Shown: positions 7,401 to 63,300, counted from the stretch's first letter. The stretch is DNA of 64,000 nucleotides from Bugula neritina (GCA_964035545.1 OZ037765.1:1984001-2048000); one strand, 5' to 3'. Numbers and translations: made by a program. The notes: generated from the sequence alone by a model not told the origin.

Positions 7401-10400
7401 TCATAGTTGTTGTTTATTCTTTCTTTCACACCTACTGCAAAGTCATTTTACAATTTTTTGAAAGCAAGTATCTGCTAGCTTGCAAAAATGTCACACATTG
7501 ACTAGTTCAATACTATTTTTCACAAAATCTTTGAAAACTCAAATAATAAAATTGTAATGTGTGAACTAAATTGACTTGTTTTCATACATTTTTGCTGTTG
7601 CATGCTGATTTGTTCTAAAAATACATCTTCATTTTTTTTAGCGAACTTGTGCTATCATAACAGCAGAGTAAATTTGCCGTGCTACATTTTAACCCTTGCT
7701 TGAAATTATACTCTGCATATTTTCAGCATGCGTAAGATTAAACCATATTTTCATTAGACTTGAGAAAGTATACTCACAATGCCCAGTATAAAACCATTCA
7801 TTTTGGGAAACCCAAGGATTGACTTATGTATTTACCAACTACTTCGGCAAAGCCAGACATTTCCTACATCTGTATGAAACAACAACCTGTACTAGCATGT
7901 CATATGAAACAACAGTCTGTACTATCATGTCATATGAAACAACAGCCTGTACTATCATGTCATATGAAACAACAACCTGCACCATCATGTCATATATATG
8001 AAATAACAACCTGTACTAGCATGTCATATGAAACAGCAACCTGTACTATTATGTCATATGTGTTCTAGAATAGCCCGGCACACCTGATGGCTAATGTGAT
8101 GTCTTCTGCAGAAGAAAATTCCTGTGCTGTGGATATTACTTATTCAAACTCCAGCTCACACCTTCTCCAATATGCAGGTAGGCTATTATACCACATGCAG
8201 GTAACAAATGGACAGTGGCTAGGGTTAATTTAATTTACCTGCTGCTATAAATTATTGCCAAATAAATTTTTATCAATTTTTTCATCTAGTTAAATTATGC
8301 AATCATCAGATAAAAACAAGATCTCTACCCATGATATAATCTGGGTGTATGCCTGCAGGAGGCCAACATAATTGCAAGTAATGAATGCAAAGATGTGAAA
8401 CACCCACAACCACATTAGAAAACTACGAGTTTAGAAAGTTTTTGTAGCCGATGTTTTAAGGCTTCGTGAACTTCATCGTTTGCAAAACTGTAAAATCCTG
8501 TTGTGGTTCACGAAAATCTTAATATTCAGCGAGTTTATTAATTATTTGCCGCGCCTGGTGCGCCTGGCGCGCCTGGCACCGAGTTAGGACAGCGAGTGCA
8601 TTTGGCACTTACTCTGTTGGAAAATTTGATGAATTTATACATGATAGGAACTTAGAAACAAGCAAACAACATGTATTTTGGCATCTGACAGTGCGTTTAG
8701 TAGACAATGGTCAGTTTTTGTTAATTGCGTCATCATTCATTGGCAACGCATCCAGACAGTATTGAATAGTATTTAGCTGAATAATTGATTATTATTGTTA
8801 TTTAATTTATACACTTTATTATATATTAATTATATTATATTTCATACTCATGAGTGTTCACACCCTTAACACAAATGCATGCACTGCAAATAAACTTTTT
8901 CCACTTTGGTTTGTCTCAGAGAAAAAGTTTAAAAACTTTTAATAAAAATTGTGCAATAGCTGAAGAAATGAGTCTTTTATTAAATACTTTTATGTGGTAA
9001 GTAAAAGTTGTTTTGTACAGAAAGAAAATCAGGCATTTCGCAACTGTTTGCAAGCACTAGGACTTGGACTGCCTTATCAATCAATTACAAAGTTAGAAAA
9101 AAAGGTAGCAGTGATATCCTTTACTTACTGCAAATCATAAAAAGGTATTAATTATCACTGTCTGTTTTTTTATTATTTGCTCAAAAAGTAATCAATTTTC
9201 ATTCACTATGTACAAGTCATTGCACAATCAGGTACGGAATAGTAGTAAACAACATTGTAGCTATTTTTAGCACAGACAGCATGCCTTGCGGGTGTTTGTG
9301 TCTAAGAGTTAAAAGGAAAGTAGTTTGATGTGACTGACAGGAGTTTAATTGAGTTCTCCGGTCATCAGTTCAACTTTTGTTCTAAACTCTCGGCTGATTC
9401 ATCAAACCACAGTAATTAGTTAAGAAGTTTATTTAACATATTCAAATTCAGACCATAAACTGAGTACACAAAAGTTAGGTTGTGAAAATGTGTTCTTTTT
9501 TATGTTTTTTTGCAACATCAAAGAAACATCAAGTAGAATATTGTCTATTTTTAGTAGCGAAAGGAAGCTGTGAAGGATAAAAATAAATATTTGATTGATA
9601 AGTGGTCTGGAGGTGAGAGATGGCCTCTGGTTGGACCGGAGTTCAGTTGAATCTGGCCGCAAACTTATGAATGATTTTGTCAAATTCTCAAGTAGTTTTT
9701 GATAATGACATGTTTTTCAAAGCTTAATTATTTTTAATCAATCATCAAAATGGTTCAGCAATTAATTATTTATGCAATCTCTAACAGCTTTCACCTGGAA
9801 GCCATCGGATGAAGACAGCAAAGTGGCCGAAATTTATATTTTATTCTTTGTTTAGTTTTCTTGTTGTTTGTGTCTTTTTGCATTAATTATGGTTCTAAGA
9901 CAGTTAAAAATAGAATAACAAGACTTGGTGAAGAATAAAGATTAAAGATAGCTATAACAAGTGTACGAGGCTGAGGGAATTTTTTAATTATAAACTATCA
10001 GAATTCGCTGCTGTTACGCTGTCGACGTCACAATGGAACGAAAACTATATTTTTTGCAGCACTAAATTCTATTGCTGCATGGAGTTTCAGAATTGATTGA
10101 TTTTTGAGGCATTAGCAACAGAGAGAAATTCTAAAAATCAGTTTTTCTAGCAAAATACTACCCGTGTTTGAGACTAAATTTACGTTACATGCATAAAAAG
10201 GAAAAGATTCAATTTGCTGAAATTTGTATAATTTATTCGCTAAAGACATCAATTAGCAGTAGACATCAGTGTTGCCTGTTCCTGTTCAAATTATTAGCTA
10301 CTTGCACAATTTGCATAAATCGTAAGCACATTTATTAATATTAACATTTCACTGAACATAAATTTTTTTTGACACTTTTAGAGCAAAGCCATATATTACA

Positions 10401-22207: not shown

Positions 22208-24281
22208 ATGACTTCGCCACCTGTAGTATATAATCTATTCGAGCGTGAAGCTGAGATTGAATGGAACTTCAGATTTCTGAATCCCGGAGACATTGCAGAA
22301 CTAAAAGACTTGTGTCAAGTTTGGTTTCCTGTTAGGTAAAAAGCTGGTTTCAAAGTTTCAAATTTTTTTGCAAAATAAAAATCTTTTTTTCACATGTACT
22401 TGTATTCTAAGTCTTTGTGTTAAACTATATTCTGTCAAAAATTAGCATTTTGGAAAAATGTTTCATTTGGCAAAGCTATCGTGAAAGTGTGAGAATACTT
22501 GGAGCACATGCATTATGGTGTGTGAATACAGGTGCTCTGATGATGTTACCCTGACAAGTGTTGTAGTCTAGTAAATGAAGGTGTCATGTTGACAATTGAC
22601 ATGTTGTTGCAGGTACCCTGACATGTGGTATAATGATGTCACTGCTGATAAGTGTAGTAGTGTAGTAAATCAAGGTGTCATTTTGACATGTTATTGCAGG
22701 TACCCTGACATGTGGTATAATGATGTCACAAGTGGCAAGTACTATTCTCTAGCCGCTGTACATCCTTATGATGGACATATCTTGGGAATTATTGTCTGTG
22801 GTGTGAAATCTGTTGACCAAGTCAACCAGGAAGTTAGTGTCTTATTTTTGTCTAAATATTTCCAAACAAACTTTAAGATAGTTTATACAGCGATCGAAAA
22901 AGCCTCATTTTTTAACTGCTGAACTTGAAATTGCTTACTGTGACTGGCATAGTATTAACTTTTATTAAATAAGTTTACCAAGACTAATTTAAAAGTACCT
23001 TCCATGTGCATCGTTATTGGTTTTATCTAGGATGGTTATTTGTTGTGCTCAAAGCAAGCTTCCTGTTTGGACACACACGTTGCCTACATCCTAAGTCTAG
23101 GAGTGACTGACAGCTATAGAAGGAAGCAACTCGGTGAGTCAGCTAGAGGTCAAAGGTCACTTTTCATTGTCGATTACGTTGAGTAGCTCTGAGTAATATG
23201 ATTCCGTGTTGCAGGGTCGACTCTGTTGAACAAACTGCTGAGTTACCTCACGTCCCCCGTCATGCAGACTGTTAAAGTTGTCTACTTGCACGTTCTCGCC
23301 ACAAACACTCCCGCCATTAGGTTCTACGAGAAACATTCCTTTACTCAGCACTTGTATCTTCCATTCTACTATCACATCGCCGGTAAATTCTCATATCTAA
23401 TGATATTTTAACTGCTTTTCTACTCATAATGTTTTATAATAGGAGTTATCTCCCCAATGTCTTTAAGTCTGAAAACAGTATGTGACACGTGTCACATGTT
23501 CAACACCTGTATGGCATGTGTCACATACTGGACACCTGTATGACACATGTCACATGTTCAACACCTGTATGGCACGTATCACATACTAGACACCTGCATG
23601 ACACGTATCACATACTAGACACCTGCATGACACGTGTCACATACTAGACACCTGCATGACACATGTCACATGCTAGACAAGTATAATAACTCTACAAGGT
23701 GTGGCTATAGTGTATTGAGTAGGATGTACTTTACTAAACACCTGCGTGTAGCCTCACATTGTGCTATTAATTTATATATTACACCGTACCTTTCTAGGTC
23801 GCTGCTGTGATGCCAGGAGTTATGCTCTCTATATCAATGGAGGGAAACCTCCCCAGACTCTCATATATCCTTTTATACTATATAGTCTAGTGTCATGTTT
23901 ATTGTTGATGCTAGTTAGGCAATGTAATGGTATAACAGTCACTGTATGTGAATGTGCAACATATTGATTTAATGTTTCAAATTTTTGCCTTTTTAGGCTT
24001 GATTCAGATATTTTTGAATTTGTCACCATGTGTTAAAATATGCAATCATATATGCACAGCTATATGTTATGTACAGCAATATAAAGTCTATGCGATTTCA
24101 TAGACTTAATTCTGGAATAACTTTGATCACTTAGCATTTCAGTTACTAGTTTCCTTGACTACAGAACACTAGCCAGTTGAGAGGCCGTTTCAGGAGGCTC
24201 TTCAGTTTAGCCTTCAGACTGTGTTACTGCCGGTTTGCAGTCTTGCGTATTGCAGCCTCTATCCGTAGCCTGTTCCGGTAG
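22208..24281 (+). CDS. NAA60: N-alpha-acetyltransferase 60 (NatF), GNAT fold with C-terminal amphipathic membrane anchor
   Basis: Exons 22208-22335, 22700-22832, 23031-23133, 23215-23382, 23798-23864, 24170-24281. Motifs: WFPVRYPDMWY, AYILSLGV..SYRRKQLGSTLL, VYLHVLATN..AIRFYEK, LPFYYHI, YALYINGG.PP. The last intron is AT-AC, and the last exon encodes the basic/hydrophobic ISQLRGRFRRLFSLAFRLCYCRFAVLRIAASIRSLFR*. Confidence 0.93.
23476..23680. repeat. Minisatellite, 29 bp unit (ACACCTGYATGACACGTGTCACATACTAG), about 7 copies, in NAA60 intron 4
   Basis: Direct tandem copies, several with the internal palindrome TGACACGTGTCA. Confidence 0.9.
23865..24169 (+). other. U12-type (minor spliceosome) AT-AC intron of NAA60
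   Basis: 5' splice site ATATCCTTT at 23865, branch site TTTCCTTGAC at 24150-24159, and terminal AC at 24168-24169. Splicing gives an open terminal exon of 36 sense codons plus stop. Confidence 0.88.
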
Positions 24282-31400: not shown

Positions 31401-34400
31401 CAGGGAGGGCACTGCATTCATACTCTACTACAGTAATTATGGGAACTTTGATCGAACCTGCTGCAGTAAAACTTTTAATTACAGCATTGAAATATAGCTT
31501 ATGTAGATCAAAGCTTTAAAACTCAATCCTCAATCAGCAAACTGAATTACATTAAAGTTTTAATGAATTTTCTTATGTTACTATAACAAAAAGATTAGGA
31601 TTTTGTAATAATTCTACTAACAATTATTATTACTGTAATGGTTTTTATTATCATTATAATAATGCTAATATCCACAATTTTACAGAGCAATAATTATTTT
31701 TTTTAACTTCTTATTTTGCTAATTGAATTTAAATTTATGTTAATTTCACACCAATAATCACATTTACATCCAACCACAGTTAAATAAAATATTCTAACTT
31801 GTCTAATCCAAATTTTGATACTAAAATATCTAGTTGCTAACAAAATAATTTCATTAAGCAAATTTAGTAATAAAGATTTTTTATTTAAGAAAGTTTCTTT
31901 ATGGCTCTGATTCCAGATGACTGGGAAGACTACATTCCAGAGCCACCAGATGGAGGGTGGGGGTGGGTGGTCATGGTAGCCTCATTTGTAAACAACTTCG
32001 TACTAGACGGCATAGCCTACTGCTTTGGGGTCTTCCTGTTGGAGTACGTCAAGTTCTTCAACTCTTCCATAGCCAGCGCCAGTCTCGCTAACTCTTTGTT
32101 GTGTGGAGTCTATCTTCTAGTGGGTAAGTCATTTTCTAGTGAGTAAGTCATCTTCTTGTGGGTAAGTCATCTTTTAGTGGGTAAGTCATCTTTTAGTGGG
32201 TAAGTCATCTTCTAGTAGGTAAGTGTATCTTCTAGTAGGTAAGTGTATCTTCTAGTAGGTAAGTCATCTTCTTGTAGGTAAGTCATCTTCTGGTAGGTAA
32301 GTCATCTTTTAGTGGGTAAGTCATCTTCTAGTAGGTAAGTGTATCTTCTAGTAGGTAAGTCTATCTTCTAGTAGGTAAGTCATCTTCTTGTAGGTAAGTC
32401 ATCTTCTAGTGGATAAGTCATCTTCTAGTAGGTAAATCAACAGGCCTATTCTACTACTTAAATAGTTCAAAATTTAAAATTTATGCTTTTTGCAACTACT
32501 TAGCAATATTAGCAATCACAATCACTAAACTTGTAGGAATATCACAAAAATTCATCTAACTGCAACTTACTTTCTTATAATTTAATTCTACTAAATTAAA
32601 TATATAAATACTACAATTTATACTACATATAATGTTTATCAATAATTGAATTAAGTTTGCTAGACAAAATTTCTGTCAAAATGCATTCAAAAAGAATCAA
32701 GTTAATATATACTCAAAAAATGCTTCGTCATCTGTGCTAAAGCAACAGCAAACCTACGAGTTTAAAATCATGACAAATTTTCCCACATTCATATTCAGGC
32801 ACAACTTTGTTTAAAGGAAACTCTATGTTTATGCTGCTAGCAGTTAAAGTGTACTTAAATCTAATTAGACCAAAATATATGTTTTGTACTTTGTACAAAG
32901 TTTAGATAACTTATAAATCTAAATTTAACACTATAGTTGAACACATGACCTTAGTGAATATTTAATTTAATTTCATTCAAGTTTGAAAAATCAGTCTTTT
33001 GAGGCCTGAGTTTAATATGACTCATGTTAAGTCAGTAGATAAGCTCGACAATCTACTAAAGCTCTTTTTGTGTCAGTAAAAACCTTTAAGCAACATTATG
33101 GGCATAGCTCAAGGCACTCCATAGCTCAGCTAAAAGCCTGGGGGGTTCTCACAAGGTTATTTCTGTGAACTAAAATCATAGTTTCTACTGTGTAGTATGT
33201 GGTGTAGCCTGAGGAGGAAAATTAAAGCTTCTTACATTGACATAAGTCTATATACATTTCATTATACCACTTAGCATAGTTCTAGCACAGAGGCTACTCT
33301 CACATGCTAATGGTTTACAACACTTGAGCCTCATCCAGGGTATAGAGCATAGCAGAGTTAAATTAGAGCTTGTTATAATTATTGCTAGCATCAAAACTCT
33401 CTTTGCTATTTGCTTTTTATCTCTGCTGGGTGTTGAATTATGAAGCTATTTTCTATTCGACACTTTCTTTATACAGAAAGCTTTTCTTGCATTACTGCAG
33501 AATATAACTTTCAGGAGTTGTCTTAACTCTTCTCATACTTTTTCCAAATATTCATATGCAGTAGTTTCAGTAATATAAATAATAATATATGGTACAGGTA
33601 ATAATAAAAGGTAATATACAATAAAAAAATACAATTTTTTAAACAGGGTTCTATGATATTTGAAGTGAAATGCTATGCTAACAATATTATCAATCAAATA
33701 CCATCATACACTATAATATAGTCATATCTGATGGCTCCATACTACATATCATTGATGAGTAAAAAGTAAATAGTTTACTCAAATAACTTCTAACACTTGG
33801 ATTAATATAATTAATATTAAATATTTCCTCAGGCCCGATAGTCGGAGCTCTGGTAAACAAGTTTGGATGTAGACCAGTTGGGATAGCTGGCTCTATAATT
33901 GGTGCATGTGCCTTCCTACTGAGTACTGCTTCAAAGTCTGTGGTTGTTTTCCAACTCACTTATGGAGTTATTGGGGGTAAGCCCACCTAACTAGCTATGT
34001 CAAGGTGAACTCACTATACTAGATAATAATCACAAAACTCCGCTATTTTATTAGTTGATGACTGAACAAAGAGTATAGTCATTTAGAATAGATCTTTTTG
34101 TAAACTATACAAATGATATGTTTGCGAGAAATAATAATATCAGTTTAGTATTAGCAGTTGTCAGTCCATTCGTTTTTAACTTTCTGCAGTATTCCAGCAG
34201 TAGACATATCCTTCTGCATTAACAAAAGTAGACACCCCATACACAACTTACTAGCTTATTAACCATATTTTAATTATCTGTTAAAATTTTCTTGTTACTA
34301 CTTCCACTTTTGAGAGGTAGGTATAGTAATGGAGAAATTAAAAAAAGTCTGTGTTCTAGATTAGAAATGTAGCAAAAGAAGTTATGTTCTTGCAAGAATT

Positions 34401-40281: not shown

Positions 40282-41120
40282 ATGGAAGAAAAGGATCATT
40301 CCGATCACTTTGAGAATGGAATTCAATCACCTGAAGAATCTGTGAATCAGGAAGAAACTAATCAGTCTAGCAGACTTCTGGGGAATGAGACATCCACAGC
40401 TTCTGTCCTTAACGAAGGTAGGGAGTTATTTCCCCTAGTAGTTTATTTGAAGATACTGGGGATTGTAATTGTGTTTAAACTTAAAGTTTTAATGAAAGAG
40501 TGTTGATGCTAAATGTTCTTTTAACAATTTGAAAACATGTAATAGACTGAAAGCAATTATATGATAATTCTATGCATTTTAACATTATTGCAGCTTGCTT
40601 TAAAACATGGTGCTCAACCTGTTTTTGGTGTTTTTTGGGCTTTGAAAGCTTAGCTTGTAGAAAACTAATATAGCACAGCTGCTTTTGATCATTTTCAAAT
40701 AATTTTGCAATATTCAAAACTCTTTTAATTCCAGTTGAAATGTCATGTTACAAAACTTATTTCTAAACTTTTTTCAAGTGGTTATATTTGATTAGCAATT
40801 ATTTCAAGGAAGTGTTGATGTACAAAGTACAGACACATGCGTGTGCTTTATATATTACTCATTCTATTTCTTAAGAAGTGCATTTACAGTATCGAAAGGA
40901 AGAGGAAACGATTTCTGCTTTTCTGTGTGCTGCTGCAGTAGCCACAATGGCAGCAACAGAGTAGTCGCATAATCTAAATAGTAGTAGTAAATATTAGTAG
41001 TAGTAGCAGCAGTAGTGGTAGTATAGCAACATTACTAGTAGTAGCAGCAGTAGCAGCATTACTAGTAGTAGTAGTGGTAGTAGTAGCAGCAGTAGCAGCA
41101 GTAGCAGTAGTAACAGCAGT

Positions 41121-41200
<80 letters not shown>

Positions 41201-44200
41201 CAGTAGTAGAAGTTATAGTAGTATAGCAGCAATACTAGCAGTAGCAATACTAGTAGTAGTATATAGTTCATTGTGCAATGCTAGCTAGACTTATGTTCCC
41301 CTGCTTATTGCTGCTTCACCTCTTTTATCTTCCAGGTGACTGGGAAGACTACATTCCTCAGCCACCTGATGGAGGTTGGGGCTGGGTCATTGCTATAGCT
41401 TCTTTCTGCAACAATTTCCTAGTAGATGGCATTGCTTACTGCTTCGGTGTGTTTCTGACTACATTCGCCACCACCTTTAGCACAACTATTGCCAAGGCTA
41501 GCCTGTCTAACTCCTTCCTCTGTGGAGTTTACCAGCTTGTTGGTATGTAGCCTGGGATTCAAAGCTTTTCACAGTAACACCTCTTCTAAAGCTCTCTGCA
41601 CCAGCCTTGCACACATTTCATAGCATTTTCAGCTACGGGGGCTTCTTAAGAGGTGATGCTGTAAAATATGTATGTTGTGATGTGTTTTTAGAAGCTGAGT
41701 ATATTGATTACATACCAATACCACCGGATGGAGGGTGGGGCTGGGTGATGGTTCTGGCGTGTTTCGTCAGCCACTTTCTTTTAGATGGTATAGCAAATTC
41801 TTTTGGCATCTTTCTTAAAATCTACAGGGACTATTTTCATGCAGGCAATGCAAACACTAGTCTCTCTAACTCTTTAATTTGTGGAGTGTATTTGATGACA
41901 GGTACGTTCTAGGTATAGCTAAAAGCAGATAGTTTTATCAAATAGTGAAACATTATTTCTTCTTTTCAGTATAACATGACTTAATTTTTCCAATATTTTA
42001 TATAAAAGTGCATTAAACAATATGATTTTACAGCTCTTTTTAGAGAAATTTGTGTTCTAACAGGTATTTTTAACACATAAAACTGTTTGTTAAAACTAGT
42101 TGTTGCATATTAAGCTGGAAGTAAGTGTGTCCATGTCTAATCACTCTGGATCCCCAAATTTCAAAACCTCAAATGAAATTTAAAACAGGCTAAACTATGG
42201 ATTCAAGATGTTCTGTTGAAGCAACATAATTTTTCAAAATGGAATTTTTTTATCCCAAAACTCAGCAAGTTTCGATAACTTCTTGCAAGTTCCAGAAAAT
42301 TCTGGCAGGTTCCGGCAGTTTCAATATATTTTAAAGTCTAGGGCTCGAATCACGCCTTATCTGTCAACAACATTTGTGAACAGAGTCTGTATTGAATTAA
42401 GAGTCATTTTTCTAAGTGAGTTATGTAAATACTGCATATGTCAAGCAGCTATGCTATGTGCAAGAGTTGAAGTATTCCAGTTTCATTCTCCACATGGTTG
42501 CCGAATTAAACCTCATATTTAAATTAGAAAAACATGTTTATATGATATGTTGACAGGTCTTGGATTGAAGTGGCAAAGCTAAAAAACAGTAGCAAGTTAT
42601 TCTTGCTGTAGCACCTATAAGAGTAAAAACTTTTGACAAAACTTTAATTTTAAAAAATTGTTTTTGTAAAATGGAAAGTACAAAAATGTAAAAACAAACT
42701 TCAATTAGATAATAATGCTAGTCTAAAAACAAAAGACTTGAAATGGGAGGAAAGTTACATCGTAACACTCAATAAGATAATTATTTTAACTCTAAATTCA
42801 TTCATGGTGTCTCATTTTATGTATTGTTTTGAATTTAAACAACAAGTTAATAAATTAATGATAGCACCTTTAGAAACTGTTAACCAACATCACCTACACA
42901 GACTTGAAAGCAAACATAGGTAGACTGCATTGGCAGATACTTTAGGACACTTGTTCTATTGTCAGATACTTTTGTTGTATAAAGCTGATTTTGAACTGTT
43001 AGATTCATGTGCAATATTGCATGCAGTTTATTTATAATTATATTTCAAATCTGAATTTTAAACCTTTCTATATTCAAAACATTACTAAATAAAATATAAA
43101 CACTTGACCTACCTTATCTATGTTGTGAATACGTAGCTTATGTTTTATTAAAGTTTGTATTTCGATTAGGGCCTATAGCTGGAGCTCTCGTAAATGCGTA
43201 TGGATGCAGGAAAGTTGGAATTGTTGGTTCAATTATTGCCGCTATAGCTTTTATACTCAGCACTTTCTCAAAATCTATCTACGTGTTCCAGTGGACTTAC
43301 GGGATTATGGGAGGTGAGTGGACTGCCCAACTCATTCCAACTAAACCAACTGCTTGTTATAAGTACAAAATATACTTTAATGAATGCTCAAACTTTAGTT
43401 AAATGCAGTAGACATCTGCCATACAAATATTCAAATTGATGCATTAAAACCAGAAAACGTTTAATAACCTTTAAACTTCCATTACTCATCTTTACAAATT
43501 CTGATTATTATAGTTGAACAATGATGGTACTGCGGTTACTGCTAATTGTGTTTCAGATAACAGCCACATATATTCTAAACAAATGTTTTACTTTCAAGGT
43601 TTTGGGTTCGGGCTGATGTATTTGCCGGCTGTCATTGGAGTTGGATTTTATTTTGAGAAAAGACGTGCCTTAGCCACAGGAATTGCAGTTTGTGGCACGG
43701 GTATTGGGACGTTTGCTATGGCACCCTTTGCGTCGTTCTTATTAACTCACTTAGACTGGATAAATGCTCATTACGTTCTCGGTAAATATTATAATTGTTT
43801 TAATTATTTTAATTATTTTATCTCAGGAGTTGTCATCTCACTTATAATGATGAACATATTTTCAATTTACGGAACTCGAAATTCATCACAATGGATTGTT
43901 TTATTAAAGCCAGTTAATTAACTTCATAAGTTTGACAGATGTATGCAAAGTAAGGCTAACAAATAATGGAACGTAAAACATAACATATCAAACCAAACCT
44001 TTTGGAATTTCGAGTTGTAACTGTATCCAACAGGAAGTAGTATGGTGTGTTGAATTATTGTGCATTCCGTACATTCTTATTATCTCCCCGGCAGCTGGTT
44101 TGCTGCTACAGGGGTGTATATTCTCCAGTTTAATGAGACCACTCACAGGAAGAAGGCGTAAACCACCAAAGGAAGCAGATATTCACCCTGCACCGACTAT

Positions 44201-47200
44201 AGTCGTGACTCCAATCCAAGAAGAAGATGGTGGGGTGGTTCAGGATAGCACGCGACATTTTCAGCCAGCTGAAGTAATAGAACTAAAGCCAAGAGCTAGG
44301 TATATTTTCATAAAACGAAGCTTTATTAAATTTTCTTTTCAATTTCCATAGGGGTAGCTGTGGCTATCACAATAAAAATAGACAAGCTAGTAATTGTAGT
44401 CACTAATTAAAACACACAGTTAATGAAGCTTTAAGATATGTTTTAGTTTTATAAGGGCTTTAAATAGCAATAATTTTTAGTCGAGAAAAAATGAAAGACT
44501 CGAACTCAAACTGAATAAGTGAATTTCTAATCTTTAAAAACTTGAAGTACAAAATTATTTGTTGATGGTACAAATATAATCTTGAAATTATAGTTTTCTT
44601 GCTATATTACGTGTGTATATAATACATTATAATATATTTTAATATATTATGTAATATGTGATACAATTCAATATAATGCAATAGAATATGCTTAATAAAT
44701 GCTTATTTAAATCAAAATATGTATGTCTTCGTTAAAAATTTGTTAATAATTATGTTAATGTATGTATGTTGTTGAATGATAGTATATTGCAATATGTTTT
44801 AAGTTATTAAGATTCTAAGTAGCAATAATCTGCCAAGTGCATAAAACATGCAGTTATAGGGGAATTTTACAAAGTGATTTGGGATCATTTCTATAAAAAG
44901 CCTATTCTATGATACAGTTCTGTTCAATGTTGAAAACTACATTTATTTTCTAGAAACATCGCCCAGTCGAGTAGTGCATTACACAGTAACAGCAAGAGTC
45001 AGAATCCCCCTAAGTTACATGCCAGCGCATTTATCGGGCCGACCACCAGGACCCCCAGTGAGATAGTGGAGGACCTAAAGAGACCACTCTATATAAGGAA
45101 CATCTTCCACAGTGGGGTAATTCACCCTTCTTTAGAGCCAGCAGACGAGGTCACAAGGAGTTCCAAAAGTATTCCCAGTGTGAGTGTTAAGATTTGTCTT
45201 CCTTTAAATTGTGAGGTTGATATAAATTTATCAGTATATATATTACAGTGGTCTGATAGAATGGGCCAGCACTAAAGTGGTCCAATAGAGTGGTACTACA
45301 AAATTTCAGCATTGAAGTTGTCTAGTATTACAATTAGCCAGCTCTACAAACTCTTATGTCCATCACCACAGGTGCACCATGCCAGGTGGTCATGTCTCAA
45401 CAAGCTGCCAAAGCCAATGGCGGATGTGATAGCAGAGATGGCTGACCCGTACATCCTGAAGAACAAGAAGATGCTGCTACTATGCACAGCCAACCTGTTC
45501 GCTATGACAGGATTCTACGTACCTATCATCTTTTCGGCAGACCGCGCTGTCGGACTTGGCATATCTCAAGATAACGCTGCCTTCCTTCTCTCCATTATGG
45601 GTGAAGTTCCAACATACCCTGTTTTATGTGATCTCTGTAATATTTTGATAGCAGCAACCGTATGATCCTTATCAACTCAGTCTACAAAACTAAGTCATAA
45701 AATCTGAGTGAGTTATTTTAAACTCAATTTTGCCAATTTCAAGGACCCCTATGTTATTTATAGAGTTTTAGAGTTATCCTCTCTGTTTTGACTACAATTA
45801 TCGAAATTTATTAGATTAAAATACCAACACACTATGGAAACATAGGCAGCAGCCCTAGTTTAGTAGTTAACGTGTTGGCCTAATATGACAAATGTGCGCT
45901 ACTGACAAGGCCCTTGGTGTAGTAGTTTTAGTTGTTGAAGTACTTTTCTAATTGAATAATTAGAAAATTTGTTGCCCATTTTATGTAAAATTTACCCTCA
46001 CTTTGAAAAAGTTCCTTTAGTATTTTTGGCTGTAATCAGTAATATGATAAAATATATTCGCTATCTTTTCACATTTATGCTGTAGTTTTATGTATTGCTA
46101 TTTCTTCCAAGTCTTTTTACATTATGCTGACATAAGCTTGTGTTTTTACATCTAGGCATGTGCAACACGATTGGCAGAGTTTTGGCGGGATTTGTGTCAT
46201 ACTTTCCTAAAATTTCACCGCTGCTTGTCAACAACGTGAGCACTACCCTAGCGGGCCTAACAGTTCTGCTGACTCCTTTCTGTACCAGCTACACCACCAT
46301 GGCTCTCTCTATAGCAGGATATGGGCTGTTTGCTTGTAAGTAGACGTATTTATGCTTTTTCTACTCTCTAATTTAAACTAAGTTATTTTATAGATGCCTA
46401 ATATTAGGTTATTGTGTTTTGCAGATTGCATTTAAAGGGTGCAGTAACTAAACAACCTATTTATAAATTTTGTGATCACTTACCTAACACAAGACGTTTT
46501 AGTATTGCACATTTATGGTAACATTGATATTTGTGTAACATGCACAGATTATCTTAGCAAGATTAAAATTAGATAAATTGGAATTTAAAGGTGAATTTTA
46601 AAAAATAGAAACTTGATTTGAGAGAACATGATTAAATTTTGGAGTTGTCTTTCTATTTGAACTGAGACGTTTTCTCTAACTTTTTTCTCTTGTTATTTCA
46701 CAGCTACTTTCATATCCCTGTCTCCGGTTATAATATGCAATCTGGTGGGCCTAGAGAAGTTAACCAATGGATTCGGGTTAATTTGTCTGGTCAGAGGAAT
46801 AACGGCCATTGCAGGACCTCCACTGGAAGGTGAGCTTTATCTTTTGTCATTATAATCAAGAAACCAGCAGTTAACATTAAATATTTAAAGAAAATTTCTT
46901 TACCATCTATAAAATCTATAGAAACAGAATATTTCAGTCTTGTACAAATTGAACGCTGCTGTAGAGATTATAAAAAATTTCTCCATCAATAACAGCTGAT
47001 ACCAACTTGCTATTCAAATATAATTTAAAGTGACTTCCTGGATTCTTAGCGATTACCTGGAATTGCTTTCCCTATCAAATTATTGATAAGAAGATAACTC
47101 CATACTTTTTAGTTTCACATATTAGCATCAAACAGAACTTTAGCTTGACTTGCTTAGTGATGTCAAAGTGACAAGTGAAAATAACATATTTTGAAATAAT

Positions 47201-47584
47201 GAAACATTTTATTTGCCTGTAAATTATTGCATTATGTCTCAAAATAGTAGACTATGCAATGTGTCATATTGACATGGCATGATGTGTCAACCTACCTCAG
47301 TGATTGACAGGTGAGTTAAATGACCCACTTTCTCTGTGTTGGTAACTGTTTAACTGACACGTCAACCTAACTCAGTTGTTGACAGGTGAGTTAGATGACT
47401 CACTTCTGCTATATTCAACTGAATGCTTGTTCTCTCTTTAGGTTTCCTATATGACTCTACTGGAGATTATGATGCCACATTCTATATGGGAGGAGCTTGT
47501 ATAATTGTCAGCGCTGCTCTTCATACGTTGCTGTATATAGTCGCAGAGACAAACCTTTTCAAGAAGAAACCTCCATCAGTGTAA
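40282..47584 (+). CDS. Monocarboxylate transporter family (SLC16) paralogue 2, with duplicated exon 2 (2a/2b)
   Basis: Exons 40282-40417, [41336-41542 or 41692-41901], 43170-43313, 43599-43781, 44095-44299, 44954-45179, 45372-45600, 46156-46335, 46704-46829, 47442-47584 (TAA). Intron positions and phases match paralogue 1. Confidence 0.92.
40978..41262. repeat. (CAG/TAG)n trinucleotide microsatellite with a perfect (CAG)25 core at 41123-41197
   Basis: Directly visible; it explains the poly-Cys ORF 41062-41271. Confidence 0.95.
41336..41542 (+). other. SLC16 paralogue 2 exon 2a (TM1-TM2), candidate mutually exclusive exon
   Basis: TCCAG|GT...GTTG|GTATGT, 207 nt, phase 1-1. Encodes DWEDYIPQPPDGGWGWVIAIASFCNNFLVDGIAYCFGVF...CGVYQLV. 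Confidence 0.88.
41692..41901 (+). other. SLC16 paralogue 2 exon 2b (TM1-TM2), candidate mutually exclusive exon
   Basis: TTTTTAG|AA...ACAG|GTACGT, 210 nt, phase 1-1. Encodes AEYIDYIPIPPDGGWGWVMVLACFVSHFLLDGIANSFGIF...CGVYLMT. Confidence 0.85.
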
Positions 47585-58719: not shown

Positions 58720-60285
58720 ATGGGTGAAAAGTCAGAAACTAAAAGCAGAATCTCTTATGATGAGAAGTTTGAAAAGTCTTCCACATTCGACGAGATTGTC
58801 GAGACTGAGAGCTTTACCACCAGCACTGTGACTACGGCAGGTACGTAGGTGTATGTAATACTGTATAGTAGTATATATAATACTGTATAGTAGTATATAT
58901 AATACTGTATATATAATACTGTATAGTAGTATATATACTCGTATATGAAATACTCACGCAATATAATAAACTCACGCAAGTTTATAGTCATCATCCTTGT
59001 GAGAAACCCTGGTGGAAAGGGTTTTTGTTAAATCATTACCAGCTGAATTATTCAGATGTGGCAGAAGAACCATTTTGACTGAATGCTCTGTCTAACATCA
59101 CCAATGACCTTTACTGGGGTTAATGACCAATGCTGTAACCCCTAGACCACAGCTGCTCCCTGTACTAGTATATGTAATACTGTATCTATAATACCTATAT
59201 AATACTGTATCTACATCTATATAATACTCATACTGTATTTATCATCTTGCTGTCTGTCGTGTCCGACTATGACTTCTGGTGTATCATTAGTCTCCATCTG
59301 GGTTTGTCAAGTGACAGCATTTGCCATTTACCGAGAGATATCTCCTTGTCTTTAAGGTTGCATTTAATGGTATCTTTGTGACGGAGCCTCGGTCTGCCAA
59401 TGTCACAGTAGCCTTCTGTTAGCTGTGAGTATAGAACCTGTTTTGAGATCCTAGTGTTGTCTAATCTGTTGGTATGTCCGGCCCATCTTAGATTTCTTTG
59501 GATGAGGGTGTCATATAGACTGGTAATGTTGGTTTTTTGAAGGATCTTCATATTAGATACAAAGTGCCACCATTTCACTGACAGTATCTGTCTTAGCCTA
59601 GGGCCACACGGTGCGTATTTTCGCATGCGAAAATTGAAATCGCAAGTAGCAAAGGTGTCCACTGTAGCGTTAGTGATGCGTGATAAATAAAGCTTTCATT
59701 TTTAAATCGCACTCGCTTTCAATAAAACGCAATTTACTGGAATGTAGCACTAAAATAAAGAAGTTGGGCTCGCTGAATAACTATCAGCCAATTAGGTGAC
59801 GACGACAGAGACGATTCGCACTTGCGTTGAGAATGCAGAGCGACAAGTGCGAAGGTTTTCTCAACGCGCACAGTGGACACCTTTGCTACTTGTGATTTCA
59901 ATTTTCGCATGCGAAAATACGCACCGTGTGGCCCTAGGCTAAGTTGATTCATAAAAAAGGCATTCAGCTTGTGTGCCGTGATCTTATAGACTGTGCATGA
60001 CTCCACTCCATATAGCAGTGTAGATAAAACAATGACTTGGTAGACTGCACATTTTGTCTTGGTTGTCAGGTCTCCGTTATCCCAAACCCTTTCTCGTAGC
60101 CTTCCGAAAGTTTGTGACGCTTTTGACATTCTCAATTGAAGTTCTTGATCAAGTTTGTTGTTGTTTGTGATGGTTGAGCCAAGGTATTTGAAGTTCTTGA
60201 CTGTGTTGAGGATTTCTCCATCTATACTAATCTTTTCTCCCTTAATCATGTTTTCCTGGTGATGGTTGATACATCATCTCTATTA

Positions 60286-60352
<67 letters not shown>

Positions 60353-63300
60353 CTGTGTCTATCTATATACACCACTGTGTATACTTGGGTGAGTGTCATC
60401 AGAACTACTCATCTATTAAACATTCTACCTGAATGATTAGTCATACATACATTATATCACTTGAATAAATTCTTTATTGCAGATACCAGGAAAGCCCTAG
60501 CTCCAGATGGTGGCTGGGGGTGGGTAATCAGCGTAGCCACATGCCTACTCTGTTTCATAGTAGAAGGAGTTGGCTATAGCTTTGGAGTATTTTTAGAATA
60601 CTATACAGAGTCGTTTGACGCCAGCGTGAGAAACACTAGCTTAGCCAGTGCTTTGCTCTATGGAGTGTTTTCTATTGCCTGTATGTACTTACTTTATATC
60701 CTGTATGTACTTACTCTATAGCCTGTATGTATTAACTTTATATCCTGTATGTACTTACTCTGTCTCCTGTATGTACTTACTCTATAGCCTGTATGTACTT
60801 ACTCTATCTCCTGTATGTACTTACTTTATATCCTATATGTACTTACTCTATTGCCTGTATGTACTTACTCTATTGCCTGTATGTACTCACTCTGTTTCCT
60901 GTATGTACTTACTCTATAGCCTGTATGTACTTACTCTATCTCCTGTATATACTTACTTTATATCCTGTATGTACTTACTCTATATCCTGTATGTACTTAC
61001 TGTATAACTTTCATGTACTTACTGTACTTACTTGCAGCTTGCATAACTAGCGATTGATGCTTTAACTTGCTTTAGTGTTGCCAACCCTCTTAGTTAAATA
61101 ATCAACGAAAACCGTTTACAATATACAAATAGCAAGCTGTTTCTAGTTGAGCTAACGTTTATATATATTTTGTTTTTGTAGTTAAAAGGCAGTTTGTTCA
61201 TTTATTAAACATGCAGCTTATATCCTGCAACAGCCATTTACTGAAACTGAGATTGCTCAAGAGAGCAGCTTTTGTACATATGCCTAGTGAAATTTCTAAC
61301 ACGTATCTCTGTTTATTCTGTAGCTCCAATGGTTGGGGCGTTGGTCAACAAATATGGCTGCCGTCCTGTGTGCATCACAGGAAGTCTGATCACATCGACA
61401 GCGTTTGTCCTCTGCACCTTCTCTCCCTCCATTTTAGTCTTCCAGATACTCTACGGAATTGCTGGAGGTAAGCAAATAATGCATTGGCTACATAACATTA
61501 CTTTGAGGAGTGAATTTTAATAAGAAATTATCAGCCAATAGTTTCATAGCGAGAGGCTGCAGACGGTTTCATAGTAGGCAGCATAACTACTTGATTCTGA
61601 TGATACCAACCGGTTAGAATGTTTTAGGGTTGTGAGAATTACACAATACTTACATTACTAACTATAGTCTAAGAATGCAACAGTTTTATACTCGCAGGTT
61701 CAATTCAACTATAGATATACCAAGAGTGGTGGTTAATTCTGTGCACGTTTTAGGACTAGGATTCTGCATGATGTGCCTACCAGCTGTCCTGTCTATTGGA
61801 ATCTACTTTGATAAGAAGAGAGGAGTTGCCATGGCGATAGGGCTTGGAGGAGTTGGGGTAGGAGTGTTTGCCCTCGCCCCCTTCTCCAGATACCTGATTC
61901 AGGAATATGGGTGGAAAGGGGCCCACTACATAATCGGTGTGTATTTTATCTGATACAAGAAGCTTAGCTTTTTCTAACTTTGCTTTCCATGTATTTCCTA
62001 CTGCACAAATAAAGAATGCTCTAACCCATTTCTAAATTTCCCAATACAAAATGTTGATGTAATTTTATTGAATGGCTTATTTTAAGTTTAATATTTTCGT
62101 CGGGTAGCTATTCGACTCTTGTCATACATTGTTCTGTAAACAGTTGTAGCTAAATCTTTCATCAACAAAAACCTAAACTTAGATCTTAAACTCAAAATTT
62201 GAACCAATAAATAAAAAAATTACTGATAGAAAGAATAGTACATTTTGCAAATAAATAAAGGTAAAACTTATAACATTAGTCCTGAATTTTTTTTAGTATA
62301 GCAAAACATTAACATTCATTTGGTTTTATTGTTACTAAATTTGGAAACAATTGCTACTTTCTGTTTAGCAGAGTTATTATTCCCCCAGTGATTCCCATGT
62401 AAGAGTTGTCTTCTATCTGCTTGTTAAATAATGCAGGCAATCTAAAGTGTGGAAATTGAGTAGAATAAGCACTTATCTACTGTGTATGCTGGTAATGGTA
62501 ATAGCTCTATAATTGTTATTTGGATAGTGTATAATGTATAAAGCTACTTGTAAAGTGTATTAGTATCAAGGAAGGAAATTTTATTGTCGGCTGTAAGAAT
62601 TAAGTAAAGAGGAACTAAACACAACACAATAAATTATACATGATCTGATGGCTTATTGTGCTTTATAATCTTAAAATTAAATATTTTTGAAATTGCATAC
62701 TTAAGAATTACTGTATACTATAGATTGCTGATAAACTGATATTAATTAAAATATTGGCATAGATGTTTAACTATTTCAACACAAAATATGAAGTTTTTAG
62801 TTCACGCATCTTTATAACCACATTTCAGCTGGATTGCTTCTACAGAACTGCATTCTGGGTTCCCTCCTCCGACCTCTTGACCCTACACCGAGCACCTCTA
62901 CAGATGAGCTGAGTGGAAAGTTTGCTTCACAAGATCAAGGCTCAGATGAGATGGAAGATGACACAATTAAAAATAGACTTGTGAAGCCAAATACCAGGTA
63001 AGTGTAAGAAAGAAGATTAGATATTTTCATATGTTTGATTTAAGCCTTCATTCCTGAGAGACTTCTGATGGCAAGAACTTTAAGCAAGTTATATACTATG
63101 TGTAGCCATACTCAACATGGCGACTGCTTTTTGAAAAATTTTGCTGGGGATCAGGAGCAATTGCGATTAAACGCTGTTGCTGACGTCACAAATGGCAAAC
63201 TTTTGTACTCTAACCATTGCCATTTGCTATTTTTAACTTTCTTATTCTCATTTAGAAAACAGCTTTTAAATATATCAAACTATGACTATCTTTTTAATAT

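Follow-up and report, generated by a model that had tools for sequence, protein, structure and literature searches.

One SLC16-type transporter gene of Bugula neritina carries a tandem duplicate of a single coding exon, and the two copies, called 2a and 2b here, are probably used as alternatives. Both copies are under purifying selection, and each mRNA would carry one of them, so that the gene would give rise to two transporters. The part exchanged would comprise the first transmembrane helix (TM1) and the first outer loop, and include the position occupied by Lys38 in MCT1 and by Asn119 in MCT8, two residues with a demonstrated influence on what these carriers transport. Tandem-duplicated exons that are used in an either/or manner are rare, are usually functional, and mark the protein region through which activity is tuned. 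The exon pair would most likely represent a familiar mechanism in a family without a recorded case, in the form of a lineage-restricted either/or switch.

The gene belongs to a cluster. The window, by which we mean the whole 64-kb stretch of DNA that was analysed, is AT-rich eukaryotic DNA (approximately 34% G+C) and contains four SLC16-type genes:

approximately 31.9 to 38.7 kb, plus strand: paralogue 1, SLC16-type gene
40.3 to 47.6 kb, plus strand: paralogue 2, SLC16-type gene, owner of the exon pair
54.4 to 50.3 kb, minus strand: paralogue 3, SLC16-type gene
from 60.5 kb to past the window end, plus strand: paralogue 4, SLC16-type gene

Three further SLC16-type genes lie just downstream of the window on the same contig. 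The interval from approximately 2,015,900 to 2,086,500 of that contig, which runs from 31.9 kb of the window to beyond its end, contains a cluster of seven or more SLC16-type genes, not all in the same orientation. Two of the cluster members (L001 and L002) are near-identical to each other in the exon equivalent to 2a and 2b. A perfect inverted repeat of approximately 75 nt (59592-59666 and 59869-59943, with a 200-nt spacer) lies upstream of paralogue 4 and may be a small foldback element. Six-frame self-comparison also picked out tandem-repeat blocks that are open in several frames (1250-1990, 7850-8060 and 23480-23680).

The features of paralogue 2, together with the exon of paralogue 1 that served as comparator, are as follows:

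40282 to 40417, plus strand: coding exon 1 of paralogue 2 (model), ATG at 40282, 45 codons plus one base, donor G/gtaggg (the slash marks the splice junction)
40979 to 41261, no strand assigned: (TAG/CAG)n microsatellite in intron 1, stopping 75 nt before the 2a acceptor
41336 to 41542, plus strand: exon 2a, 207 nt, phase 1-1, encoding the lead-in, TM1, the first outer loop and the start of TM2
41543 to 41691, plus strand: intron between 2a and 2b, 149 nt
41692 to 41901, plus strand: exon 2b, 210 nt, phase 1-1, encoding the same protein segment as 2a
43170 to 43313, plus strand: exon 3, 144 nt, phase 1-1, encoding the remainder of TM2 (GPIAGALVNAYGCRK...) and TM3
43598 to 47581, plus strand: later coding exons, then stop; approximate boundaries 43598-43783, 44046-44267, 45012-45125, 45357-45608, 46152-46340, 46694-46834 and 47426-47581
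31917 to 32123, plus strand: sole exon 2 of paralogue 1, 207 nt, with 71% amino acid identity to 2a and 57% to 2b

Exon 1 is open from its ATG and ends in phase 1, compatible with either copy of exon 2; nothing homologous to it occurs in the cluster paralogues, and it has the status of a model. Intron 1 is 918 nt long, and arrays like its (TAG/CAG)n microsatellite are dispersed across the genome. The acceptor of exon 3 (43170, GPIAGALVNAYGCRK) joins in frame to either copy, and the gene looks intact down to the stop after 47581.

A preliminary description of this DNA had reported exons of 207 and 210 nt with a 149-nt spacer, open frames, canonical AG/GT sites and a shared 1-1 phase. All of this was reproduced for both exons, coordinates included. 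Exon 2a has the acceptor ...cttttatcttccag/GT and the donor TTG/gtatgt, and exon 2b the acceptor ...gtgtttttag/AAG and the donor CAG/gtacgt. The 2b acceptor is of the NAGNAG kind, and use of the second AG (41693-41694) moves the exon start to 41695 and gives a length of 207 nt. Translation of 2a begins DWEDYIPQPPDGGWGW..., and that of 2b begins (A)EYIDYIPIPPDGGWGW... The two exons match each other well past chance (E = 1e-19), with 53% identity at the amino acid level, 61% at the nucleotide level, and differences at 32 of 68 aligned residues. Of the motifs described as common to both copies, PPDGGWGW is indeed found in each, but the one given as DGIA.FG.F was one residue short: its correct form is DGIA..FG.F, which reads DGIAYCFGVF in 2a and DGIANSFGIF in 2b. 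The other three paralogues of the window have a single such exon, as had been stated, and so do the three genes beyond the window. Among the seven cluster genes examined, the exon is duplicated only in paralogue 2. The earlier observation that 2a resembles the paralogue 1 exon more than it resembles 2b also holds (71% vs 53% identity).

Both copies align to one and the same 65-residue segment in single-copy relatives, which in P0088, for instance, spans residues 30-95. Exon 3 picks up at residue 95 of that protein, and full-length relatives carry the segment once. Among solved structures, 2b aligns to residues 12-68 of human MCT1, and 2a to residues 71-113 of MCT10 and 12-65 of MCT2; these are the sole PDB matches of the two exons. 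In established MCT topology, the segment runs from the cytoplasmic lead-in through TM1 and the first outer loop into the first part of TM2.

Full-length relatives match paralogue 2 in exon after exon, all the way from TM1 to the C-terminal end, and identity to human MCT proteins is low overall (E = 1e-6). The motif [D/E]G[G/S][W/Y]GW, which leads into TM1, is present as PPDGGWGW in both 2a and 2b, in a column that is invariant across 141 relatives. A second SLC16 signature, YFxK[RK][RL]xLAxGxAxAG, leads into TM5; exon 4 of paralogue 2 carries it, reading GFYFEKRRALATGIAVCGTG and holding YFEKRRALATGIAVCG. Singly, 2a and 2b are too short for Pfam scoring, and comparisons were run exon by exon; exon 4 matched Pfam MFS_1 with E = 7e-6, a fragment score under the whole-protein cut-off. 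Proton-coupled carriers of the MCT1-4 type have an Asp309/Arg313 pair in TM8, and the exon at 46155-46337, where this pair would be expected, gave no match in a PDB sequence search. Judged by its sequence, paralogue 2 is an SLC16, or monocarboxylate-transporter-like, member of the MFS family.

That both exons are under selection had been proposed from their conserved motifs and open frames, and codon-position tests and a simulation of neutral decay now bear this out. The differences between 2a and 2b number 19, 19 and 42 at codon positions 1, 2 and 3 (chi-square p = 0.0013). Their dN is 0.36, and synonymous sites between them are saturated, which makes the duplication old. A dN/dS ratio had been suggested as a check. 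It was run and yields no number, owing to synonymous saturation in every pair, and it is the codon-position contrasts that show constraint. Where the bases of 2a and paralogue 1 are identical, changes assigned to the 2b lineage amount to 11/54, 9/57 and 17/30 at positions 1, 2 and 3 (Fisher p = 8.5e-5); 18% of first and second positions have been altered, against 57% of third positions.

The simulation started from either 2a or the paralogue 1 exon and ran until it had as many nucleotide changes as are observed. Neutral decay left a protein identity of 32-33% +/- 4% (maxima 47-49%), compared with the observed 53% and 57%. The observed identity was attained in 0 of 3000 runs, and the frame was still open in just 2-3.5% of runs. 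Exon 2b retains every near-invariant residue of the family and matches distant relatives no worse than 2a does. A profile scores it at 109 bits against 100 bits for 2a, a comparison that is biased in that the profile was built from 2b-like proteins. Exon 2b is no decayed copy: both copies have been held as coding sequence by purifying selection. At sites invariant among paralogue-1-like exons, 2b is altered at 14 of 95 and 2a at 7 of 95, and 2b is possibly the faster or less constrained copy, perhaps with some relaxation. The selection signal averages a long history and is compatible with a recent loss of 2b use; the assembly holds no second haplotype copy for a polymorphism test.

An exon whose protein sequence is under selection, in a reading frame that its neighbours fix, would have to be translated as part of some mRNA. 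No ATG lies upstream within the open frame of 2b, so 2b is not an independent start exon. A 2a-2b junction would leave the frame intact, but, as we read the sequence, it would set the polar lead-in EAEYIDYIPIPPDGG directly after half of TM2. The other half of this helix is encoded in exon 3, and skipping both 2a and 2b deletes TM1. Since joining the copies breaks TM2 and skipping both loses TM1, substitution would be their sole sensible use and the only arrangement that yields a normal twelve-helix MFS fold. Each mature mRNA most likely holds 2a or 2b, never both. The gene would then yield two transporters of 12 helices each, with 32 of the 68 residues in the swapped segment different between them. 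These differences would include the entire first outer loop and, in TM1, the cavity-facing gate position, which is Tyr in 2a and Asn in 2b. We speculate that a single promoter in this way supplies two carriers with distinct substrate preference or kinetics.

Such exclusivity would have to be imposed. Both introns are GT-AG and U2-type, the 149-nt spacer is spliceable and presents no steric barrier to joining 2a with 2b, and the exon lengths of 207 and 210 nt are both multiples of three, so that nonsense-mediated decay would not police mis-spliced forms. Given this spacer and these frame-keeping lengths, exclusivity would need splicing factors or RNA pairing. No Rbfox-type GCAUG was found beside 2a or 2b. 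The spacer contains an imperfect 26-nt hairpin (41567-41592 with 41641-41666), the 3′ arm of which has an alternative partner in the pyrimidine tract of the 2a acceptor (41308-41324). Just upstream of the 2b acceptor, AAGAGGTG can pair with CACCTCTT in the spacer or in the 2a acceptor pyrimidine tract. The layout is as expected of a selector and docking pair, and we offer it as a lead only, without statistical support, given that the spacer hairpin and the alternative pairing are no more stable than shuffled controls (z = -0.7 and -1.0).

Other uses of the pair can be imagined. Exon 2b could be a former alternative exon that was recently silenced, leaving a pseudo-exon in a gene that now makes the 2a form only. 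The acceptor of 2b would fit such a history, having a weaker, G-interrupted pyrimidine tract compared with that of 2a, as would the faster evolution of 2b and the lack of any 2b orthologue or 2b-containing protein fragment in any library. The missing protein fragments lose their force on inspection of the 2a control, which is likewise without a match from the species and makes that blank uninformative. Against silencing, 2b keeps 70 codons open in DNA of approximately 33% G+C, retains all family-invariant residues, and has both splice sites intact, including a good donor (CAG/gtacgt). We regard recent silencing as unlikely. Somewhat less likely again is that 2b is used only in transcripts that begin at a promoter of their own, upstream or intronic, with their own first exon, in which case promoter choice, and not splice competition, would separate the two forms. 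An exon 1 that is a model without a homologue among the paralogues, and an intron 1 of 918 nt, leave space for this proposal. It is opposed by the need of 2b for a phase-1 upstream exon, just like 2a, by the little room that a 149-nt spacer offers for a promoter plus an exon, and by the lack of an in-frame ATG upstream in the 2b open frame.

The inclusion of both exons, or of 2b as a cassette after 2a, would give a protein with a repeated TM1-TM2 segment, and we consider it very improbable. The arithmetic of the gene would permit it: lengths that are multiples of three keep the frame, the 149-nt intron can be spliced, and two extra helices preserve in/out parity. The structure of the protein speaks against it. 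Exon 2a stops in the middle of TM2, the remainder of which (GPIAGALV...) is in exon 3, and half a helix would then meet a polar lead-in of cytoplasmic type. Moreover, no relative has two adjacent copies, and the proteins in which the segment matches twice are tandem genes that have fused.

If 2a and 2b substitute for each other, as we favour, the exchange would alter the gate position of TM1. The residues equivalent to Lys38 of MCT1 had been identified as Tyr in 2a and Asn in 2b, with NN replaced by SH in TM1, and an HMMER alignment to MCT1 agrees on each point. The importance attached to Lys38 in the preliminary description is also confirmed by the literature, in which it is one of three charged residues essential for MCT1 (PMC9982067). 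The equivalent residue of MCT8, N119, is described as critical for transport and, being smaller, as allowing amino-acid-type ligands to bind (PMC12078798). At this position, the other seven exon copies of the genome have Tyr or Phe, and the column for 141 relatives holds Y in 82, F in 22 and N in 21. By these counts, the Tyr and Asn states both occur naturally, and within its own cluster 2b is the exception. Lys is absent from the position in every paralogue of the cluster, which means that, at that site, these are not classical proton-coupled carriers of the MCT1-4 type. A difference in proton coupling (pH) between the 2a and 2b forms that hinges on the K38 site would be less likely, and a difference in substrate preference would be a reasonable guess. 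The first outer loop is fully different, being TTFATTFSTTIAKA in 2a vs KIYRDYFHAGNANT in 2b. An N-x-S/T sequon is present in 2b and in paralogues 1, 3 and 4, and 2a is without one. Tentatively, and with less confidence than we attach to the splicing proposal, we suggest that one SLC16 gene may switch between Tyr and Asn at the TM1 gate, along with a new first outer loop, and so serve two substrate classes.

Mutually exclusive exons that arose by tandem duplication are known from transporters, including human SLC25A3 (exons 3A and 3B), SLC8A1 and SLC44A2 (PMC9741552). Like SLC25A3 3A and 3B, the exons described here are adjacent and homologous, have equal phase and near-equal length, and code for membrane helices of a carrier; the resulting isoforms would likewise be identical outside the swapped segment. 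In contrast to SLC25A3 and SLC8A1, the fold here is MFS/SLC16, and not that of a mitochondrial carrier or exchanger. The pair has so far been seen in one genome. Of the features by which mutually exclusive exons of tandem origin are recognised, 2a and 2b show adjacency, a common strand and phase, similar length, canonical splice sites and purifying selection. Exon 2b resembles MCT8 and MCT10 in having Asn at the gate position, and structures exist for MCT1, MCT8 and MCT10 (6LYY, 9GSZ and others). In vertebrate MCTs, the Lys and Asn states reside in separate genes, whereas here Tyr and Asn states reside in two exons of one gene.

We found no papers that tie either/or exons to SLC16, and no SLC16 genes in the supplementary lists of mutually exclusive or duplicated exons from two human surveys. 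If our proposal is correct, paralogue 2 would provide the first either/or exon switch described in SLC16, and a natural experiment on the contribution of TM1 to MCT selectivity. To our knowledge, almost all invertebrate members of SLC16 are orphans. Should both isoforms be made, their side-by-side expression would be a clean test of the role of TM1 in substrate choice.

The origin of 2b can be read in two ways. A 51-row tree of the segment groups 2a with paralogue 1 (support 82/76) and places 2b, with weak support, below the clade of paralogues 1-4. A tree constrained to unite 2a and 2b is 7.9 log-likelihood units worse, and the AU test does not reject it (p = 0.19). In three-way residue counts, 5 residues are unique to 2a, 14 to 2b and 2 to paralogue 1; if 2a and 2b are sisters, 2b has evolved approximately 2-3 times faster (14 vs 5 unique residues, p = 0.04). 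The counts and the tree fit two histories: 2b arose earlier, or it has evolved 2-3-fold faster.

The duplication has a narrow known distribution. The paralogue 1 intron contains no trace of a second exon copy (E up to 10), and no second copy lies beside the equivalent exon in the six other paralogues. A full HMMER scan against 1.84 billion representatives returned 2037 relatives; no 2b orthologue was found among the representatives, the best identity to 2b being approximately 60%. The closest relatives that the libraries offer are remote; their best match to paralogue 1 has 81-82% protein identity and saturated synonymous sites. Five relatives' contigs (L004, L005, L006, L007 and L009) have one copy, resembling the paralogue 1 exon and 2a, and no second within 420-1950 nt downstream; these contigs are short and their orthology to paralogue 2 is uncertain, as they may hold paralogue 1 orthologues or genes older than the duplication of the gene. 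Five proteins with two matching stretches (P0001, P0002, P0003, P0005 and P0022) were rejected as candidates, being fused tandem genes or assembly repeats with no adjacent exon copies. A protein word search with the 69-aa 2b exon was blank and is uninformative, the 2a control being equally without a fragment from the species. A search with the 133-aa 2b open frame returned one paralogue-1/2a-like fragment only, and its 2a-frame control returned nothing from the species. On present evidence, the exon pair seems to be confined to the Bugula neritina lineage.

The junction at the end of this exon is also a site of repetition in other members of the cluster. In paralogues 1 and 4, the donor of the equivalent exon is followed by minisatellites made of copies of the exon end and the 5′ splice site. 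That of paralogue 1 (32107-32439) has a 19-nt unit, present 17 times, which contains AGGTAAGT; that of paralogue 4 (60671-61023) has a 22-nt unit, present 16 times, which contains CCTGTATGTACTTAC. The two arrays have different units and periods, and both occupy the same junction that precedes the duplicated exon in paralogue 2.
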